Shown here piece after piece: positions 4,400-61,536 of a stretch of DNA of 64,000 nucleotides (its first letter is position 1; every line of letters starts with the position of its first letter). The DNA lies in contig NC_068994.1 of the NCBI RefSeq assembly GCF_001194135.2, forward strand, positions 4,211,519 to 4,275,518. Reading direction: 5' to 3'. The notes under the pieces were generated by a model. That model ran no database searches and was not told the origin of the DNA. It saw nothing but the letters and a program-made list of their open reading frames with translations. The stretch comes from Octopus bimaculoides. Lineage: Eukaryota. Both the position numbers and the translations under genes were made by a program.

Positions 4400-5880
4400 T
4401 TTGTCCTTCACATTTTCTCCCTCTCTCGCTTTCATCTCTTAATCTCTCTCTGTTTTTCTCTGTGTTGACTATGGACATAGCTGTCTGTCTATTGATTTTT
4501 CCTCCTTTACCAACGGGATGGGGATGTCACAGTACAACACCACCGCCACCACCACCTATAATTCCTGCCATTCACACAACACCTCCACCGCTTCCTCCTC
4601 CACCTCCATACTTTATTGATTGATCATTGATTGTGAAGCCAGATTTTTACATTACTCAAACTCTCTCTCCCTCTCTCTCATTATCTCTATTCTCATTCCT
4701 AGATGTTTTTTTTCTTCTCTCTCATGCCATAGCTTCACTCCATCTTGCTTGTCATCTCTTTCACACACACGCACCACCACTCTACCATCAAGTCCTCAAC
4801 CGTTACGCTGCACCGCCGCTGCCACCATCTCCACCACCGCCAACTACTGCCATCATTATGCATCATCATTCTTCACACATCCCCTGTTCCCTTCACCGCC
4901 ACCACCACAGCTGTCATCACCGTCACTCCCCTCCTTTTCTTCCATCACCACCACCACTATTGCCAACGCTATTCTATCACCACTCACCCCACCCCCGCCG
5001 CCACCGCATCAAAAGTCCTTCCCCCCACCCCAGTCCATTGCCTCCTGTTGCCATTGATACTACTAACACACACACACACACATATCCAACGCNNNNNNNN
5101 NNNNNNNNNNNNNNNNNNNNNNNNNNNNNNNNNNNNNNNNNNNNNNNNNNNNNNNNNNNNNNNNNNNNNNNNNNNNNNNNNNNNNNNNNNNNNNNNNNNN
5201 NNNNNNNNNNNNNNNNNNNNNNNNNNNNNNNNNNNNNNNNNNNNNNNNNNNNNNNNNNNNNNNNNNNNNNNNNNNNNNNNNNNNNNNNNNNNNNNNNNNN
5301 NNNNNNNNNNNNNNNNNNNNNNNNNNNNNNNNNNNNNNNNNNNNNNNNNNNNNNNNNNNNNNNNNNNNNNNNNNNNNNNNNNNNNNNNNNNNNNNNNCGT
5401 TCTGCCAACAACCACCTCCATCAATGCCAATAGTCTCCTCTACCACCATCACCATCACCACCACCACCACTCTACATCCTGCCAATAGCTCCCCTCCCAC
5501 ACCAGCACCACCACTACCACTACCATTCAAACCACATACCTTGCCAACAGCCATCATCACCCCCACCACACACAGTAGCCACTACTAACTACCATTGTTG
5601 TCATCACCAATCCTTCCTACCATAATATACCTTGCCAATAGCCACTACCTCCAATTTCCTCCTCTTCATCCTTTCCAATAATTTATACCCTGCTGCTAAT
5701 AACTACCAATTCCCCCCACCCCATCGCCCACCACTGCCATTGTCTTCACCCTTCTTACCTTGACAATAGCCACCCCTGGCACCACCATCCATTTACCACA
5801 CATTCTGCCAATAGCTCCTTAGTCTTGAGACCCAAGAATGACCACCACCACCACCACACAACTATCTCTTTATGTTTGTC
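4400..5880. repeat. Degenerate (CAC/CAT/CT)n low-complexity tract
   Basis: Mosaic trinucleotide repeats spanning a gap. Confidence 0.85.
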
Positions 5881-9860: not shown

Positions 9861-12182
9861 ATGGAGAAGACTTCATCTGATAAATCGGGGAAAAACCTGG
9901 TCTCCAACACCAGCGATCGGAACCACCCTCATAGCATTTGTTCAGCAAGCAGCAGCAATGGTACCAGCTGTGCGAATAGTCCGAGCCATGTCACTGCCGC
10001 CATCAACATGCATTCAAAGCAGTTCATGCAGCATTATCCATGGCAGGCTCAACGCTTCCCTCACGTCCCCGACAAGTCGTGGTGCAGTGAGATATACAGC
10101 AACCAGTTTGCTCAGCGTTGCTACTTACAGTCTCATGGTATTTTCCCATCAGCTGGCACTACTGCTGCGGGCAGTTGCTCCGAGAAGGCTTTCCACTGCG
10201 CCGCCAGCTACATGAACCAGTTCACGCAGCGGTGTTTCCTGCAAACGCACGAACGGCTGCAGAACTTCGATAAACAGGCAATGGATGTTAACGACTACAT
10301 GAAACACTTGCATGGGGGCACGTACCAGCCGAAACACTGCCAGGCTGCTAACAACAATAGCATAGTGAGTAGTGGTTGTGGTGGTGGGAGTAGTTGTAGT
10401 GTTGGGGGTGGTGGCAGCTGTAGCATTGGCGGTGGCGGTGGTGGTGGTGGAGGTAGTTGTGGTGGTGTTGGTGGTGGTAGTAGTAGCTGTAGTGTTAACC
10501 TGACCAGTAACAGCAGCTGCGGCAACACCAACCATCGCAATAGCGTATCCAGCAGCAGCAACAACAACAATAACAACACTAACAGCAACAATAACAACAA
10601 CAACAACAACAACAACACCAGCAGCAGTAACGGCAACACATCGGTTTATCCAAAGCAAGTAGCTCAGGTACAGCATGCTGTGAAAACACAGCCACCCTCT
10701 TCACCAAACACAAAGGTGCCACTTCAGCAGCCCCATCACATGCTCCTTCTGCAACCCCCTCCACCCATCGAGAAACCCTTCCACTGTGACCTTTGTCCAA
10801 AACAGTTTGCACGTAGGAATACGTTACAAATGCACAAACGCATTCACACAGGTGAGAAGCTGTTCCATTGCAGCTACTGCGACAAGCGATTCGTGCACCG
10901 AGATAAACTTCAAATACATGAGCGGACTCATACGGGAGAGAAACCGTTTCATTGCACTTACTGCACGAAACAGTTTTCTCGTAAGGACAAATTAAAGATT
11001 CACGAGTGCTCTCACACGGGATTAAAACCTTATCACTGCAGCTACTGCGACAAACGGTTTGTCCAAAGAGAAAAACTTAAGATTCACACAAGGATCCACA
11101 CGGGAGAACGTCCATATTCGTGTGACATTTGTTTCAAGCAATTTGCTCGCGGTGATAAGCTTCAAATTCATCGTAGAACTCACACAGGAGAGAAACCATT
11201 CCACTGTGAATACTGTCCGAAAAACTTTGTCCAGCGTGATAACTTGGTTATACACAGAAGGACCCATACTGGGGAGAAACCATTTTCTTGTGAAGTATGT
11301 TCAAAGCGATTTGCTCGCGGTGATAAGTTGCAAATCCATCGTAGAACACATACGGGAGAGAAACCGTTCCATTGTGAATACTGTCCGAAGACTTTTGCTC
11401 AAAGAGATAATTTAGTCATACATAGAAGAACCCATACAGGAGAGAAGCCCTTCTCCTGTGAATTCTGTCCCAAGCAGTTCTCTCGGAGTGATAAGCTCCA
11501 GTTGCATCGCAGGACTCACACGGGTGAGAAATTGTTCCATTGTAAGTATTGTTCAAAGCAGTTTGTTCAAAGGGACAAACTTCAGATCCATGAACGAACT
11601 CACACAGGCGAGAAGCCGTTTCACTGTGAGATTTGTTCAAAGAAGTTTGCTCGTAAAGACAGGCTGCAAATCCACAAGAAGACGCACACTGGTGAGAAGC
11701 CCTTCCACTGCGACCTTTGCCCGAAGCAGTTTGCACAGCGAGACAACTTGAAAATTCACCGGAGGATACATACCGGTGAGAAGCCTTTCCACTGCGAAAT
11801 CTGTTCGCGCCAGTTTGCCAGAAAGGACAAATTGCAGATTCATCGGAAAACTCACATGATTGAGAAAGTTTCGTTCAACTGCGACATATGCCACAAGCAA
11901 TGTGAATCAAAAGAAATGTTGATGAGTCACCAGCAATTAAATCATGCACCACCACCTCCGCCGCCGCCACCACCACCACCACCACCACCCCTCACCAATA
12001 ACGACACCTCACATTTATGCTGCCAGGTTTGTAATCGGGAATTTGCAACTGTCGAGAAGTTACAAAATCATGAAAAGACACATAAACCAGTGAGAAATAA
12101 TTTTCTGAAACCCACATCGTGTAAGAATATCAAGGAATACACCCCAATGAGTACATTGCTGTGGCAATCTATCTACCCCTAA
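9861..12182 (+). CDS. ZNF-A: multi-C2H2 zinc-finger protein, 773 aa (13 tandem fingers at 10779-11855 plus 2 spaced C-terminal fingers; poly-G, poly-N and poly-P tracts)
   Basis: Uninterrupted ORF starting in aggATGg context. 13 CxxC-x12-H-x3-H units joined mostly by TGEKP-type linkers (84-nt period), then [22 protein letters not shown] and [21 protein letters not shown]. Paralogue of ZNF-D. Confidence 0.95.
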
Positions 12183-17061: not shown

Positions 17062-17372
17062 AATGTCCATTCCCCATGCTGGCATGGTTTGGACAGGAGC
17101 TGGTAAGGATGACAGCCACTCTAGGGTCTATTGTTTTGGCAAGGTTCCTACAGCTGGATGCTCTTTCTAATGTCAACCACTTTAGAGTGTATTGGGTGCT
17201 TTCTATGTGGCCCCAGCACCAGCACTTTTTATGTGGTACCATCGCCAGTGGTTTTTATGTGGTACCATCACTAGTGCTTCTTATGTGGTACCATTGCTAG
17301 TGCTTTTTAGGTGGTACCATCACCAGTGGTTTCTATGTGGTATCATCACCAATGATTTTTATGTGGTACCAA
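17062..17372 (-). mobile_element. SINE family B with an internal 26-bp tandem expansion (17195-17372)
   Basis: ccatgctggcatgg...ctacagctggatg, then ~7 copies of agtgctttttatgtggtaccatcacc. Confidence 0.8.
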
Positions 17373-18825: not shown

Positions 18826-19335
18826 ACGCCTGTCAGAATCAAGTATGAGAATCAAATTGTTGGAGTTGAATATGAGAGTCACACTGTTGGAGTGGAGTAT
18901 GAGAGTTATGCTGCTGGAATGACATATGAGAATCACTCTGTCGGACTTGAGTATAAGTCACACTGAGCCACACTGTTCAAGTGGAGTATGAGTCACACTG
19001 TTGGAGTGGAGTATGAGAGTCACACTGTTGGAGTGGAGTATGAGAGTTATGCTGCTGGAGTGACATGAGAATCACTGTCGGACTTGAGTATGAGTCACAC
19101 TGTTGGAGTGGAATATCAGAGTCACACTGTTGGAGTGGAGTATGAGAGTCACACTAGTGGAGTGGAGTATGAGAGTCATGCTATCAGAGTCACACTGTTG
19201 GAGTGGAGTGTGAGTCACACTGTCGGACTGGAGTATGAGAGTCACACTGTCAGAGTGGAGTATGAGAGTCGTCTTAGCAGGGTGAAGGTTAAGAGTCACA
19301 TTGTCAGAAAGGAATATGAAAGTCTAGTTTGTTGA
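18826..19335 (+). repeat. 27-bp minisatellite (consensus agtcacactgttggagtggagtatgag), ~19 units
   Basis: Direct tandem units, some shortened to 23-25 bp. Reads SHTVGVEYE in one frame. Confidence 0.9.
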
Positions 19336-19756: not shown

Positions 19757-20902
19757 TTATTTCGTCTGATAAAGCTGTGCTGCCGCTGGGGCAGAGACGG
19801 TGACGGCTCCTTGGTACATTTGAATGGTAGGGAAGATCTGTGTGGTCGCCGGAGATATCTGTATTGTGCTCGGAAAGATATGTGTGACAGGATTCATCTG
19901 GGTGTAGAGCGGATAGACTTGAGTGCCGGCCGGGTAGGTGGCTTGAGTGCTGCTCGCCACCACGTTCGAGTTGAGGTGGTGGCTAACATTCACTCCCGAG
20001 TGCTGTGGTTGGCTGGAGATGTCGACAACCGAGGCACTTGCTTGTTGGCTAGCAACCACTGCGTGTTGTGATGTATTCACACTGACAGCACAACTGGTAT
20101 TCACTCCGGAGTTACTGTTAGCGGCAACTGTAGTGCTGCTAGTCTGTTTGTCTTTGTTAGGTTTATTATTGGTATTTGAAGAACTACTACTACTACTACT
20201 ACTACTGTTACTATTACTACTACTACCACCACCACCACCACCAGTACTGCTGTTGTTGTTGTTACTGCTGCTGATTGGTGTTGGGGAGGCTTCTGTTGTG
20301 ATTGCTGTTGTTGTTGCCAGTGTAACGTTGTTGTTGTTGTTGTTGCTGTTGTTGCGTAGCGGCACGCAGCTTATTTTGATGCCGTTCTTGTTTGGCCGAT
20401 TGTGTTTGACGAGGTGGTCTTTGCGGGAGAAGGCGAACCCACAGATCTGACACCTGAACGGCCGCTCGCCCGTGTGGATCCTCTGGTGCACCTTCAGGTA
20501 CGACCGGTGCACAAACGTTTTGCGACAGATCTCGCAGCTGAATCGCTTCTCCAGCTGATGCGTGCCTCGGTGCCGTGCCAGGTGGTCGCTGCGGTAGAAC
20601 GCGCAGCCGCAGATCTGACACTTGAAAGGGCGCTCACCGGTGTGAATCCTCTTGTGGAGCTTCAAGTGGTCTCTTCGCGACAGGCACTTGCCACAGATGT
20701 CACACTTGTACTGCTTGTCGGATGTTGCCCCCGGTGCCACCGACAGAGCCATGCCACTGTCCCCTGCAATATTAGCAGCAGCCAGCACGACAGCTTGTTG
20801 ATTACCGCTGCTGCTGTTGTGAAGAGTGTGTCCATGGTGATGGTTATGGTGATGGTGATTGTGATGATGATGGCCAATATGATTGCAACTATTTCCCTCC
20901 AT
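19757..20902 (-). CDS. ZNF-B: C2H2 zinc-finger protein, 381 aa (N-terminal His-rich tract, 3 canonical fingers plus 1 lacking the last His, low-complexity N/S/G/Q tail)
   Basis: ORF with [73 protein letters not shown] and [17 protein letters not shown]. Polypyrimidine tract plus AG acceptor just upstream (minus strand, 20917-20912). Confidence 0.92.
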
Positions 20903-25461: not shown

Positions 25462-25620
25462 CGCCAGCCAGTCATGAGTGGTCGATCCCAACCCCAACCC
25501 TAAACACGTATTCATTTGCACACACCGGTTAGGGATAGGGTTAGGGTTAGGGTTAGGGACAGGGTCAGGGCTAGGATCAACCACTCACGACTAGCTAGCG
25601 CGACCGCGCGCTCGGGACCG
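25462..25620. repeat. Hairpin element with a telomere-like (TTAGGG) core
   Basis: 27-bp inverted arms 25462-25488 and 25574-25600 (4 mismatches) enclose caaccccaaccctaa and 7 NNAGGG hexamers (25529-25570, four perfect TTAGGG). A GC hairpin gcgcgaccgcgcgc follows. Confidence 0.8.
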
Positions 25621-31906: not shown

Positions 31907-33124
31907 TCACATCAATGATTGGATGTTATTGTCAGAGGATCCTTGATTGTCACCTTTTCTCTGACCAACTGTGTAGGAGGGAATGGTCAAGGTACTGGGG
32001 CAGCCATTCCATGTCCACGAAGACGCTGGGGAAGTGTTCCGTTTCCAGTCGTAGTGAGCTTGTGAGGGCATCTGCTGCTGCTGCTGTTGCTGTTGTTGTT
32101 GTGGAGGCTGTTGGTGTGCAGCTGAAGCTATAGAAGCCGTGGTGGTTGTGGACCTCTGTGGCTGTGAGACACTTTTCTGATGGGAACACAGGGATGATGC
32201 AATGTTGTCGAGGTTCAGGGTTGAGAGAACCGGCTGTTTTAGAAGAGTCGTCGTCTTGGATGTTGAAGTGGCTGATGCTGGTTGGTGAGAAGACGAAGAC
32301 ACTGATGCAGCTTGATAAGAATGATGTTGTGCTGAGCTGACACCTGCAGCATTCATTAAAACAGGAGTGTTCAAACCACTAATTGGAATCGTTTTACATA
32401 GTTCGTCAGCAGAAACCGGGGTCAAATGGTGTGAAATGTCATGTCTGTCTCCATGGAGAAATTCCTTTTTTAAAAGATTGCCACACTTTGCATTCGAGAG
32501 TACCGAAGTCATATTGGTTTTGTCGTGAGGATGAATAGTTTGAGAGCAACTGTAATGGTTGGTATGAGTGCGTTCATGCTTGTTTAGGTGGTCTTTCCGA
32601 GAGAAAGCTTTCGTACAAATCTGACAACAAAATGGCTTCTCCCCAGAATGGGTTCGTTGATGGATTTTCAGTTTGTCATTTCGAGAAAAAGCTTTTGGGC
32701 AAATATGGCAGACAAATGGTTTTTCTCCTGAATGAGTTCTGGCATGGTTTTTTAGCTTGTCTTTACGAGCAAAAGCCATAGGGCAGATATCACATGCAAA
32801 CGGGCGTTCTCCTGTGTGTGTCCTTTCATGGATCTTTAGTTTGTCCCTTTCTGGGAACGCTTTACAGCAGAAGACACAGATGAAATGCTTCCCTAATTCG
32901 GGAGCCAATTCGTGTTTCTTCAGATATGCACGGAGGGTAAACCGCTTACGGCAGACATTACATTTGTAGGGTTTCTTGTCGATGTACGACTGCCGGTAGC
33001 TGACGTAGGTGTATGGGGTGGACAAGGGTGGTGTTGATGGGCTCGGGGTTGTGAATGGACCAAAGCCATAGGAGTGATTGCTTCCGACAACGGGTGAGAA
33101 TTGAACCTCTTGGTTTGCATACAT
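31907..33124 (-). CDS. ZNF-C: C2H2 zinc-finger protein, 405 aa (1 atypical plus 4 canonical fingers at 32564-32968; S/T-rich tail with poly-Q10)
   Basis: ORF with TGERP/SGEKP-linked fingers ([84 protein letters not shown]). An in-frame TAG upstream of the ATG closes the ORF. Confidence 0.92.
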   Translation of the reverse strand: MYANQEVQFSPVVGSNHSYGFGPFTTPSPSTPPLSTPYTYVSYRQSYIDKKPYKCNVCRKRFTLRAYLKKHELAPELGKHFICVFCCKAFPERDKLKIHERTHTGERPFACDICPMAFARKDKLKNHARTHSGEKPFVCHICPKAFSRNDKLKIHQRTHSGEKPFCCQICTKAFSRKDHLNKHERTHTNHYSCSQTIHPHDKTNMTSVLSNAKCGNLLKKEFLHGDRHDISHHLTPVSADELCKTIPISGLNTPVLMNAAGVSSAQHHSYQAASVSSSSHQPASATSTSKTTTLLKQPVLSTLNLDNIASSLCSHQKSVSQPQRSTTTTASIASAAHQQPPQQQQQQQQQQMPSQAHYDWKRNTSPASSWTWNGCPSTLTIPSYTVGQRKGDNQGSSDNNIQSLM

Positions 33125-46059: not shown

Positions 46060-46340
46060 CCACTTAAAAAGCATACAGCCCACACTGTAAAGTGGTTGGG
46101 TTAGGGTTAGGGCATCCAGCTGTAAAAACCTTGCCAAAACTGACCTCGCCTGTGCTTGTGCCACGTAAAAAGCACTAAGTCCACTCTGCTGAGTGGTTGG
46201 TGTTAGAAAGGGCATCCCGCTGTAAAAACCATGTGAAACAGACATAAAAGTCTGGTGCAGTCTTCTGCCTGGCCAGTTTCTGCCAAACCATCCCACCCAT
46301 GCCAGCACAGAAGGCAGACGATAAACGATAATGATGATTA
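46060..46340 (+). mobile_element. SINE family B (partly duplicated; contains gggttagggttaggg)
   Basis: Two gggcatcc..ctgtaaaaacc segments and tail aaacgataatgatg. Confidence 0.75.
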
Positions 46341-53047: not shown

Positions 53048-53645
53048 TCATCAGTCTGGAGTAGCTTGTTACCACTATAACATTAGTTTAGCCTGGTACA
53101 TGCAACCATTATAACATTAGTCTTGTCTGGTAATTGTCACCACTATTGCATTAGTTTTGTCTGGTAATTGCTACCACTATAACATTAGTTTTGTCTGGTA
53201 GGCAATTTCACTGTGGCATCAGATTTGTCTGGGATTTCTTACCAATATGTAAAATAGTTCTGTCTGAATTTAGTACCATCATGACATTAGTTTTGCCTTG
53301 TGATTAATACATTAGTTTTGTCTGGTAACTGCCATGACCATTCCATTAGATATATCTGGTTATTGCTACTATTATGCCAAAACATTTTTTTATAGGGAAT
53401 GTTACCAAAATGGTATTAGTTATGTCTGAGAACTCTTACAGTTATGACATTAGTTTTGTCTGGGAACTGTAATTTCTATGTCATTAATTTCACTGAGAAC
53501 ATTCATCCATATTCCATTAGTTATGTCTGGCAATTTCAACCAACATGCTATGGGTTTTGTCCAGGAATTTCCACCACCGTGGCATTAGTTTTGTCTGGGT
53601 ACAACAACAATAACAGCAACTATTACTCTGTTAGTTATGTCTTGC
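53048..53645 (+). repeat. Degenerate 34-bp minisatellite (acattagttttgtctggtaattgctaccactata), ~16-17 units
   Basis: cattag anchors at 53081, 53115, 53149 and 53183, plus a variant at 53217 (34-bp spacing). It decays rightwards. Confidence 0.85.
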
Positions 53646-59349: not shown

Positions 59350-61326
59350 TCACCAGGGACAGAGGATAGAGCTAACCGGAGTATACTCTCTTAAACTTTT
59401 GCAAGAATTTGGCTTCAAGAAATTGTTTTTCACAGAGCCATGACTCTTCTGATGACTCTGCAGCTTGAGTGCAGACGCAAATTGCCGTGGGCACATGTCG
59501 CATTGCAACAGAGGTTCAGTGTGTATCTTCATGTGCAGCAGGACAGCTTCCTTGTCCGGGAACTTCTGCAGACAAACATGGCACTCGTGTAGTGCTGAAT
59601 GATCTTCGTTGTGCTGATGAGCAACAGCAGGAACCGTAATGATGCTCTCGTGGTTATTCATGGCCAATATGTGGGCGTCCTCGGTGCCGTTGCTGACCTG
59701 CATTCTCTGCTGTTGCACAAGCAAGTCTTTCTTCATGCAGATATCACAGGGTTCGGTGTGGCTCTTGTCAGGTGTGTTGTTGCTGTTGAGATTATTTAAG
59801 TGGATACGTCTGTGTATCTGTAATTTGTCACTGCGATTAAAATCACGGGAACAGAATTCACAGTGGAAAGGTTTCTCTCCAGTGTGAATCCGACGATGGA
59901 CCTGAAGCTTGTCCTTTCTGGCAAACTGCCGGCTGCAAAGATCACAGTGGAAAGGTTTCTCTCCAGTATGTGTCCTTTCGTGTATCATAAGCTTATCTCT
60001 CTGGATGAACTGTTTCGGGCAATAATTACACTGAAAAGGTCTGTCCCCTGTGTGGATTTTCCGATGCAGTTGCAGCTTATCACGGCGGGAAAAGCATTTT
60101 GTACAGATCTCACAAGCAAATGGTTTCTCACCTGTGTGAGTACGTCTGTGGATGACCAAGTTGTCCTTTTGGGCAAAAGATTTGGGACAAATGTCACAGG
60201 CAAAGGGTTTCTCCCCAGTATGTGTCCTACGATGAACCTGGAGTTTGTCCCCACGAGAGAACTGCTTACAACAAATATCGCAAGAGAAAGGACGCTCTCC
60301 GGTGTGAATTCTCTCATGAATCTTCAGTTTCTCTCTTTGAATGAATCTTTTGCCACAATAGGTGCAAGGAAACGGTCTTTCTCCAGTGTGAATCCTTCGA
60401 TGTATTTGGAGTTTATCTCCTCGTGAAAACTGTTTCAAACAAAACTCGCAGTGATAGGGTTTTGCACCGGTATGGACAGTCTCGTGAATCTTCAGCTTAT
60501 CTTTGCGGGAGAACTGCTTCGGACAATAACTGCAGTGGAATGGTTTCTCTCCTGTGTGTGTCCTCTCGTGAATCTGCAACTTGTCTCGGTGAACAAACTG
60601 TTTGGCACAATAGTTACACTGGAACAACTTCTCACCCGTGTGAATCCGTTTATGGATCTGCAACGTATTCCTTCTTGTGAACTTCTTGGGACACAGATCA
60701 CAATGGAATGGTTTATCTGGCACTGTTTGCGATGACAACAGAAGGTGACCCGATGTAGAAATACGACTCACCATACTGGTAGACGTCAGGTCCTTCTTGA
60801 AGAGGGCCATGGGTTTGTGTTGAATATGGATGGGGTCAGCATTACAGTAAGTATCGCTGCAGTTGTTCTCCTTGCCAGCAATTGCATTGCAGTCATTGTT
60901 CCGTTTCTCTGCGACATCAGCAGCAAGTGACGGTTGTTTCTCAAGAACTCCATTAGTAATGGCGCAGCCGTTCTCTCCAGTACACTCTTGTAATGACGAC
61001 GGGGTTAAGAAACAGTTCGGCATAAACTGTTTTCCGTAAATATCATCAATAGAGATTTTCTGATTTGTTGGAAATAATCCATGTGTCTTTAAGTAACAAC
61101 GCTGAAGGAATTGGTTACTCAAGATCTGATGTGTAAAGTGGGGTGGTGGTGGTTTGGGGCTTGTAGCCGGTGGTCTCCGATGAGCTGCTGGTATTGTGTA
61201 GGGTTGAGCAAATTGTCTTTCATATGCAATGGCATGTGAAGGAGGTCGGTCAGATGTTGCTACCTCGTTACTTTTCTTAATGATTGCTTCCTCGGTTATT
61301 TTTGACAGGTTAGTTTTATCCATCAT
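59350..61326 (-). CDS. ZNF-D: multi-C2H2 zinc-finger protein, 658 aa from the first ATG (11 tandem fingers at 59800-60708, a vestigial CDIC and 2 C-terminal fingers)
   Basis: The ORF track starts at GTG 61401, but the first ATG is at 61326 (MMDKT..., compare ZNF-A MEKT). 11 linked fingers. Strong acceptor ttttttctattttcag|g gives an exon start at 61484. Paralogue of ZNF-A. Confidence 0.95.
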   Translation of the reverse strand: MMDKTNLSKITEEAIIKKSNEVATSDRPPSHAIAYERQFAQPYTIPAAHRRPPATSPKPPPPHFTHQILSNQFLQRCYLKTHGLFPTNQKISIDDIYGKQFMPNCFLTPSSLQECTGENGCAITNGVLEKQPSLAADVAEKRNNDCNAIAGKENNCSDTYCNADPIHIQHKPMALFKKDLTSTSMVSRISTSGHLLLSSQTVPDKPFHCDLCPKKFTRRNTLQIHKRIHTGEKLFQCNYCAKQFVHRDKLQIHERTHTGEKPFHCSYCPKQFSRKDKLKIHETVHTGAKPYHCEFCLKQFSRGDKLQIHRRIHTGERPFPCTYCGKRFIQREKLKIHERIHTGERPFSCDICCKQFSRGDKLQVHRRTHTGEKPFACDICPKSFAQKDNLVIHRRTHTGEKPFACEICTKCFSRRDKLQLHRKIHTGDRPFQCNYCPKQFIQRDKLMIHERTHTGEKPFHCDLCSRQFARKDKLQVHRRIHTGEKPFHCEFCSRDFNRSDKLQIHRRIHLNNLNSNNTPDKSHTEPCDICMKKDLLVQQQRMQVSNGTEDAHILAMNNHESIITVPAVAHQHNEDHSALHECHVCLQKFPDKEAVLLHMKIHTEPLLQCDMCPRQFASALKLQSHQKSHGSVKNNFLKPNSCKSLREYTPVSSILCPW

Positions 61327-61536
61327 GTTTCTAGAGAATTTCACCTCGAATTGACTCAAAGATGGATGAACAACAACAGAACAGGATTCAATACTCTTCA
61401 CAGGGAAAAATAAATATTTGAATTCTCTATTTTAACAGGAACTTCAGCAACTGATCCATTTAACTTGTTATAAAAGGGAGATACCTGAAAATAGAAAAAA
61501 AAAACACATTAACATTCATGGAGATATATATATATA

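Follow-up and report, generated by a model that had tools for sequence, protein, structure and literature searches.

A zinc-finger array of two alternating finger types in Octopus bimaculoides: age, constraint and predicted DNA preference

What does a long zinc-finger protein recognize when its fingers alternate between two types? This question is raised by ZNF-A, a C2H2 zinc-finger gene that lies in a 64,000-nucleotide (64-kb) stretch of the Octopus bimaculoides genome (contig NC_068994.1, positions 4,211,519 to 4,275,518; called the window here). ZNF-A is a single unbroken open reading frame (ORF) of 773 codons plus a stop codon (window positions 9861-12182, + strand). Octopus genomes are noted for very large and recent expansions of C2H2 zinc-finger (ZNF) genes. 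ZNF-A is the opposite: an old gene in which every base-contacting residue has been kept. To judge from its sequence, it is an intact and strongly constrained gene. From its two-letter finger alphabet follows an unusually clear prediction: a GG/RA pattern that repeats every 6 bp. What is new here is a conserved gene that appears to be unannotated, together with a predicted specificity that can be tested; there is no new mechanism.

Anatomy of the finger array

We parsed the fingers with a regular expression and read the code positions (helix positions -1, 2, 3 and 6) of each. The array has 13 fingers (F1-F13; 10779-11855, + strand), counted from the Phe of F1 to the last His of F13. All 13 are canonical C2H2 fingers of 84 nt, with the form C-X2-C-X12-H-X3-H, a core Phe and Leu at +4, and they are spaced exactly 84 nt apart. 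The residues at -1, 2, 3 and 6 are RNTM, HDKI, RDKI, QEKI, RDKI, QDNI and RDKI in F1 through F7, and QDNI, RDKL, QDKI, RDRI, QDNI and RDKI in F8 through F13. These match, letter for letter, the residues listed in an earlier, sequence-only reading of this DNA. That reading had also claimed that Arg alternates strictly with Gln or His at -1 and that position 6 is always hydrophobic. Both claims held throughout the array. Position -1 was Arg in every odd finger and Gln or His in every even finger (His only in F2), and position 6 was Met, Ile or Leu in all 13. The odd fingers are of an Arg type, R-x-D-K-L-x-I/L, and the even fingers are of a Gln/His type, Q/H-R-D/E-N/K-L-x-I. Of the 12 linkers, nine read TGEKP or TGERP, and the three exceptions, TGEKL after F1 and F9 and TGLKP after F3, are conserved.

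Strict alternation of seven Arg-type and six Gln/His-type fingers is one of 1716 possible orders if the fingers are treated as independent draws; they are not independent, having descended from duplicated two-finger units. The residues themselves are also unusual. We compared them to a background set of 2234 fingers taken from 115 non-cephalopod hits. Asp at position 2 was found in 1.8% of the background fingers and in 11 of the 13 fingers of ZNF-A. Ile, Leu, Val or Met at position 6 was found in 24% of the background fingers and in 13 of 13 in ZNF-A (a probability of about 8e-9).

Several observations indicate how the array was made. Tandem Repeats Finder (TRF) detected a 168-nt period, the length of two fingers, at 11136-11531 (2.4 copies, 78% matches). 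The most similar units of the array are F5-F6 (11115-11282) and F7-F8 (11283-11450), which form an internal two-finger duplication (11115-11450, + strand). Protein and DNA identity are both 82% between F5 and F7, and 93% and 79%, respectively, between F6 and F8. Even and odd fingers also differ beyond the four code residues (permutation p = 0.012), with the even fingers having Tyr between the cysteines and Arg at +1, and in most cases Val at -2. Based on the period, the similarity of these units and the differences at non-contact positions, we conclude that the array was built by duplicating a module of one Arg-type and one Gln-type finger. The alternation is genuine rather than random. It arises most directly from descent, after which strong purifying selection has acted.

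It is possible, although we consider it somewhat unlikely, that the periodicity is only a record of this history. That is, a few fingers might bind an ordinary, non-repetitive motif, and the others might be kept for protein contacts, non-specific affinity or spacing. The 168-nt period fits this explanation, as do the differences between odd and even fingers at non-contact positions, which common descent predicts. In addition, the three linkers that depart from the canonical form, all of them conserved, could split the array into sub-arrays after F1, F3 and F9. Against it, every finger retains residues capable of contacting bases (Arg, Gln, Lys or Asn), and the linkers are of the TGEKP type.

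The Pfam matches of ZNF-A were to zinc-finger-type families only, including PF00096 (zf-C2H2; 183.8 bits, cut-off 25.2) and PF13465 (zf-H2C2_2; 295 bits, cut-off 40). The scan found no KRAB (PF01352), BTB, SCAN or other effector domain, and no acidic activation-domain family was among the matches. The last finger of the protein, which lies downstream of the array, matched zf-C2H2_jaz, a family of double-stranded-RNA-binding fingers. ZNF-A is a classical (Krueppel-type) C2H2 poly-zinc-finger protein and has all of the defining features that we tested. We also considered whether it could be a KRAB-ZNF of the type that represses transposable elements in tetrapods. This was rejected, as there is no PF01352 match and the N terminus is made up of finger relics together with low-complexity tracts (described below).

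A cuttlefish orthologue and the age of the array

A search with the C-terminal part of ZNF-A identified one fragment of 85 amino acids on a Logan contig, L001. A gene caller had misread the finger region of the orthologue on this contig as a 374-amino-acid ORF on the opposite strand. Read directly from the contig, the Sepia orthologue of ZNF-A is an ORF of 541 amino acids (L001:1590-3215). It aligned to window positions 10755-11905 without gaps and with 75.7% DNA identity.

The 13 fingers of the octopus and Sepia proteins are 91.4% identical. The proportion of synonymous differences (pS) is 0.94, which is saturated, and the proportion of nonsynonymous differences (pN) is 0.062. All of the residues at -1, 2, 3 and 6 (52 of 52) are the same in the two species, and the substitutions are mainly in the beta-hairpin. 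This preservation of the code residues, despite saturated synonymous sites and with variable hairpin positions, argues against the view that the periodicity records history and nothing else.

For 11 of the 13 octopus fingers, the mutual best match in Sepia was the finger at the same position. Therefore, the 13-finger layout, including the duplication of F5-F6 and F7-F8, predates the split between octopus and cuttlefish, which took place on the order of 250-300 million years ago. The array arose before that split, and before the duplication that separated ZNF-A from its paralogue ZNF-E (see below), and has been frozen since.

The ZNF expansions of octopus are dated to ~25-41 million years ago, and octopods and decapods underwent them largely independently of each other (PMC9795677; PMC13218726). 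ZNF-A has a one-to-one orthologue in cuttlefish with saturated synonymous sites, and therefore belongs to an old, conserved minority of ZNFs. It does resemble the members of the expanded octopus C2H2 clusters in that it is a single-exon poly-ZNF gene found among other O. bimaculoides ZNFs; five ZNF ORFs lie within the 64-kb window.

In its other half, L001 carries an ankyrin transcript, the protein of which clusters at 90% identity or more with a protein from Sepia (Acanthosepion) pharaonis. In the genome of that species, this part of the contig matches eight exons at 95-100% identity, distributed across 39 kb. Because the ankyrin part is spliced across these exons, L001 is a spliced cuttlefish RNA-seq contig, and the ZNF-A orthologue is transcribed in Sepia. 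The contig is probably chimeric at the junction between the ZNF and the ankyrin sequences, because the 10 kb upstream of the ankyrin gene in the S. pharaonis genome do not contain the ZNF. Synteny between the two genes was rejected for that same reason, and there is no ankyrin gene in the window.

ZNF-A was missing from a collection of ~15 billion proteins, both by exact look-up and in searches with the whole protein, its N-terminal 171 amino acids and its C-terminal part. The matches to the full-length protein were dominated by long vertebrate ZNFs and included neither an orthologue nor ZNF-A itself; the N-terminal 171 amino acids had no matches. Genes that neighbor ZNF-A on the same O. bimaculoides contig, 60.6 Mb long, do occur in the collection. 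Thus, ZNF-A appears to be an unannotated gene in the protein sets searched.

Predicted DNA specificity

The recognition code for C2H2 fingers provides a starting point for predicting what ZNF-A might bind. In this code, Arg, Lys or His specifies G and Asn or Gln specifies A; an aliphatic contact residue leaves the base variable (PMC12264921). A pair of Arg at -1 and Asp at 2 stabilizes the contact between Arg and G, and hydrogen-bonds weakly across the strands with C or A, which corresponds to G or T in the recognition strand (PMC12264921). In engineered modules, RSDKLVR reads GGG and QSSNLVR reads GAA (PMC5260015). The code as stated in the sequence-only reading (G for Arg at -1, A for Gln at -1 and for Asn at 3, G or T for Asp at 2, and RSDKL as the GGG helix) agrees with these sources (PMC5260015, PMC12264921).

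Two known systems resemble ZNF-A in how bases would be read. The polydactyl fingers assembled from Barbas modules use the cores R-S-D-K-L and Q-x-x-N-L for GGG and GAA (PMC5260015), and F9 of ZNF-A is RSDKLQL. The Barbas modules have Arg at position 6, which fixes the 5' G. In contrast, ZNF-A has Ile or Leu there, so at most two bases are specified per finger. The second system is finger 2 of ZBTB7A/LRF (PDB 7N5W, 7EYI and related entries), chains of which are among the PDB sequence matches of ZNF-A. Like the odd fingers of ZNF-A, this finger has Arg at -1, Asp at 2, Lys at 3 and an aliphatic residue, Val, at 6. In the crystal structure it reads exactly two guanines (PMC8553545). The Asp accepts a hydrogen bond from the cross-strand C, and the Val makes no base contact (PMC8553545). 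ZBTB7A is not an orthologue of ZNF-A: it has four fingers of differing types and a BTB domain, with no alternation and no long array.

Based on the likeness to ZBTB7A finger 2, we infer that each finger of ZNF-A would act as a two-base reader. Fingers with Arg at -1 and Lys at 3 would read GG, those with Gln at -1 and Asn at 3 would read AA, and those with Gln at -1 and Lys at 3 would read GA. With its hydrophobic residue, position 6 would leave the 5' base of the triplet open, and only Asp at position 2 of the next finger would bias that base, weakly, to G or T. Contiguous fingers on duplex DNA would then read 5'-nGG kAA kGG kGA kGG kAA kGG kAA kGG kGA nGG kGr knG-3'. The target strand is predicted to be purine-rich with a 6-bp GG/RA beat, and a run of about 4-8 fingers would probably be engaged at each site. 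Natural targets may be G/A-rich, quasi-periodic elements that are conserved across coleoids. Overall, we consider the chances that ZNF-A is a sequence-specific reader of double-stranded DNA with this GG/RA beat to be about evenly balanced.

Several points weigh against this reading. The evidence for transcription comes from Sepia and not from octopus, and the gene is not in the annotations searched. Asp at 2 beside Gln at -1, with a constant Arg at +1, falls outside the known code, and the His at -1 in F2 and the Thr at 3 in F1 are ambiguous in it. Long arrays rarely use all of their fingers, and ZFX/ZFY/ZNF711 bind through the last three of 13 conserved fingers (PMC11030341). Therefore, conservation alone is no proof that every finger of ZNF-A reads DNA. 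Lastly, sites in the window were no better than controls. We scanned the window with a home-made, 39-bp position weight matrix (PWM) for all 13 fingers, derived from the simple code, using column-permuted matrices on the same sequence as controls. The best sites scored 24-28 of 54 bits, compared to 23.9 +/- 2.4 (maximum 30.9) for the permuted matrices.

The top PWM sites include an interstitial telomere-like array at 25532-25570 (rank three) and a (TGGTGA)n tract at 20835-20873. The degenerate 12-mer KGGKRAKGGKRA, allowing up to one mismatch, was found 68 times in the window compared to 13 expected. We rejected this enrichment as evidence of a target, as the matches are runs of G and (TGG)n tracts, which dinucleotide shuffles do not preserve. 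The predicted hexamer, in three units with up to two mismatches, was found in 12 regions of the window, ranking 7-8 among 30 composition-matched hexamers; at the same threshold there were none in 59.5 kb of Sepia DNA. The sequence-only reading had described such mosaic microsatellites as abundant in the window. Given the rank of the hexamer and the source of the 12-mer excess, this description does not hold. The reading had also proposed (KGG-KRA)n as the target. This is reasonable as a 6-bp preference based on the code, in view of ZBTB7A finger 2, but the window scans provided no support for a tandem repeat as the target.

Some of the repeats in the window have a context of their own. The (TGGTGA)n tract at 20834-20873 is the complement of codons for the His-rich N terminus (13 residues) of a 381-amino-acid ZNF (19757-20902, - strand). 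Several of the TGG/TGA mosaic tracts here are likewise coding low-complexity sequence of ZNF genes, including the (TGG)n of ZNF-A itself at 10427-10478. At 25488-25575 there is a short, head-to-head telomere-like element that adjoins an assembly gap. It consists of CCCAACCCCAACCCTAA, a spacer of ~23 bp, and then about eight TTAGGG-like units. A separate TTAGGGTTAGGG is found at 46101.

The sequence-only reading had linked ZNF-A to telomeres, and we assign almost no probability to the idea that it binds telomeric (TTAGGG)n or interstitial telomere-like arrays. Binding of telomeric DNA by C2H2 fingers is known: TZAP/ZBTB48, ZBTB10 and ZNF524 place fingers on a G-rich hexamer repeat, much as predicted for ZNF-A, and ZBTB10 uses two fingers per 6-bp unit (PMC9958480). 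The Arg-type fingers are compatible with GG(G). A target of ZNF-A must be conserved in coleoids, as is TTAGGG, the only experimentally determined telomere motif of cephalopods (PMC13218726). The third rank of the interstitial array also seems to favor this idea, but that rank is within the range of the column-permuted matrices. The fingers known to bind telomeres (TZAP ZF11, ZBTB10 ZF2 and ZNF524 ZF2) read GGG through a triad of Arg(-1), His(3) and Arg(6) (PMC9958480). In contrast, the Arg-type fingers of ZNF-A are R-K-I/L, R-R-I or R-T-M, and none of its 15 fingers (the array plus two degenerate fingers downstream) has the R-H-R triad. The Gln-type fingers would need to read TTA, but Asn at 3 in F6, F8 and F12 specifies A, and Lys at 3 specifies a middle G. 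The telomeric proteins also have BTB domains, and TZAP has a C-terminal arm; the Pfam scan found no BTB domain or other feature of a telomere protein in ZNF-A. These residues argue against the link to telomeres.

It is very improbable, in our estimate, that the main ligand of the array is something other than duplex DNA, such as RNA, single-stranded nucleic acid or protein. Some multi-finger proteins do bind RNA or protein, the last finger of ZNF-A has its Pfam match in a double-stranded-RNA-binding family, and both the uniform hydrophobic position 6 and the near-universal Asp at 2 are atypical of the background fingers. However, TGEKP linkers, canonical spacing and Arg-Asp pairs are hallmarks of DNA-binding arrays, and a natural R-D-K-V finger, that of ZBTB7A, has been seen on DNA in a crystal structure.

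The closest parallel for an alternating array is the classical case of ZFX, ZFY and ZNF711 (PMC11030341). Like ZNF-A, each of them has 13 C2H2 fingers, arranged as conserved repeats of an even and an odd finger, and they provide a precedent for periodicity as history, since mutagenesis assigns DNA binding to fingers 11-13 (PMC11030341). They differ from ZNF-A in having H-X3-H in odd fingers and H-X4-H in even fingers, and an acidic N terminus (PMC11030341). In ZNF-A, all 13 fingers have H-X3-H and the alternation is in the base-contacting residues themselves. We considered ZNF-A as a relative of ZFX/ZFY and rejected this because all of its fingers are H-X3-H and it has no Pfam domain other than fingers. 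The historical explanation also gains from a four-finger beat (Q R Q Q at -1) in the related proteins P0006 and P0058 (see below), which suggests that block duplication is a family habit. On the other hand, any contiguous subset of F3-F13 keeps the Arg/Gln alternation, and even a four-finger footprint would be 6-bp periodic. Thus, the earlier claim that two-finger periodicity predicts a 6-bp tandem-repeat target stands in part. A 6-bp periodic preference is a reasonable expectation, but periodicity alone does not imply a periodic target, as ZFX/ZFY/ZNF711 illustrate (PMC11030341).

If the predicted GG/RA specificity is true, ZNF-A would be a natural long zinc-finger array that reads a short tandem repeat, and would offer a first handle on conserved cephalopod cis-elements or repeats. 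If the prediction fails, ZNF-A would be another warning, after ZFX/ZFY, that the periodicity of fingers mirrors their history rather than their target.

Flanking regions, the paralogue ZNF-E and cephalopod relatives

Outside of the array, ZNF-A contains several other recognizable regions, all on the + strand. Near the N terminus (10011-10259) are two finger-like motifs, one of 35 residues and the other of 26, that have lost their zinc ligands. They align to ZNF-E (QFLQRCYLKTHGLFP), and similar relics are present in the ZNFs P0006 and P0144. In all four proteins, these relics are decayed fingers retained within the protein. Downstream (10374-10637) are low-complexity tracts of Gly/Ser/Cys and Asn/Ser, whose codons form (TGG)n and (CAA)n microsatellites within the ORF; TRF reported TGG at 10427-10478 and CAA at 10559-10617. 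In the alignment, both tracts are absent from ZNF-E. Following the array is a degenerate 14th finger (11880-11945) of the form C-X2-C-X12-H-X4-H, in which the core Phe is replaced by Cys and which is weakly kept in Sepia. The last finger (12021-12083; 21 residues) is also degenerate but is conserved, and it is followed by a conserved C-terminal tail of 32 residues (12084-12179). A Sepia fragment, P0126, is 89% identical to the last finger plus tail, and the tail of Sepia ZNF-A is the same as that of octopus except for one S-to-T change.

ZNF-E (59350-61401, - strand) is an ancient paralogue of ZNF-A. Its array comprises 11 canonical fingers (60708-59800), and it shares with ZNF-A the N-terminal relics and the type of C-terminal tail. 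Its residues at -1 are R H R R Q R Q R Q R R; that is, the alternation is broken twice. The fingers of ZNF-E and ZNF-A differ with a pN of 0.19 and a pS of about 1.0 (saturated). As finger divergence indicates, the split between these paralogues is older than the divergence of octopus and cuttlefish ZNF-A. An orthologue of ZNF-E in Argonauta hians (P0041) has 11 canonical fingers that are 96.8% identical to those of ZNF-E, with unchanged code residues. ZNF-E is identical to the first 658 amino acids of the O. bimaculoides protein XP_014771513.1. This annotated protein (1089 amino acids) looks like a fused gene model, made up of ZNF-E and a 405-amino-acid ZNF (31907-33124, - strand) that is 26 kb away on the same strand. 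The latter ZNF is named 'replication initiator 1-like' in O. vulgaris.

We searched for relatives with the C-terminal 108 residues of ZNF-A against 1.84 billion representative sequences. A pattern following the last finger, ...[DE]-[YF]-x-P-x4-[LYF]-W-[QH], was found in ZNF-A, Sepia ZNF-A, P0144, P0160, P0172, P0166, P0006 and P0058. We call these the LWQ-tail ZNFs, a descriptive name coined in this analysis. ZNF-E and its Argonauta orthologue end in a variant of the tail, ...EYTPVSSILCPW (the C terminus of ZNF-E is near 59353-59440, - strand). The conserved tail, common to at least eight cephalopod ZNFs, may be a previously undescribed docking or effector motif.

The alternation of Arg and Gln at -1 is shared with ZNF-A by P0144 (R Q R Q R Q R Q R R; ENA ERZ21867824, Logan ERR12408771) and P0160 (Q R Q R Q; from the same Sepia RNA-seq series as L001). 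The corresponding residues are Q R Q R H Q Q R Q Q R Q R in P0172 (O. bimaculoides XP_014771537.1, on the same contig as ZNF-A) and R R R Q R R R in P0166 (O. sinensis, O. vulgaris and O. bimaculoides). P0006, P0007 and P0058 have an LWQ-type tail, 14-15 fingers and the four-finger beat mentioned above, and Tyr is common at their positions 2 and 3. Periodicity of a higher order than the single finger seems to be a habit of this family. Position -1 is nearly always R, Q or H in the group, and position 6 is aliphatic in most members, the exception being P0166, in which it is mostly Cys. The two features noted in the sequence-only reading, at -1 and at 6, are thus largely traits of a family of cephalopod ZNFs, of which ZNF-A is the cleanest case. 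By these sequence features, ZNF-A is a member of a cephalopod C2H2 family with zinc-less N-terminal relics, arrays with R/Q/H at -1 and I/V/L at 6, and a tail of the form '...E-Y-T-P...L-W-Q'.

A broader possibility, which we regard as decidedly unlikely, is that ZNF-A, ZNF-E and their relatives make up a coleoid family that reads two bases per finger. Their alternating Arg and Gln fingers would have evolved to coat hexameric tandem repeats in any register, with the shared tail recruiting a common effector. The coated repeats could be microsatellite-like, satellite or telomere-associated, and such proteins would be a natural counterpart of engineered zinc fingers that target repeats.

The window also contains other repetitive DNA. 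Between 3700 and 5800 is a region of strongly strand-asymmetric low complexity, with a GC skew of +0.24 and then -0.55, ACC/ATC-rich mosaics such as CACCATCACCATCACCACCACC, and an N gap at ~5094-5398. Albertin and colleagues are said to have reported in 2015 that tandem repeats flank octopus ZNF clusters. Minisatellites lie between the ZNF genes of the window, at 18842-19298, 17196-17371 and 53071-53595, with units of 27 bp (AGTATGAGAGTCACACTGTTGGAGTGG), 26 bp and 34/68 bp, respectively.

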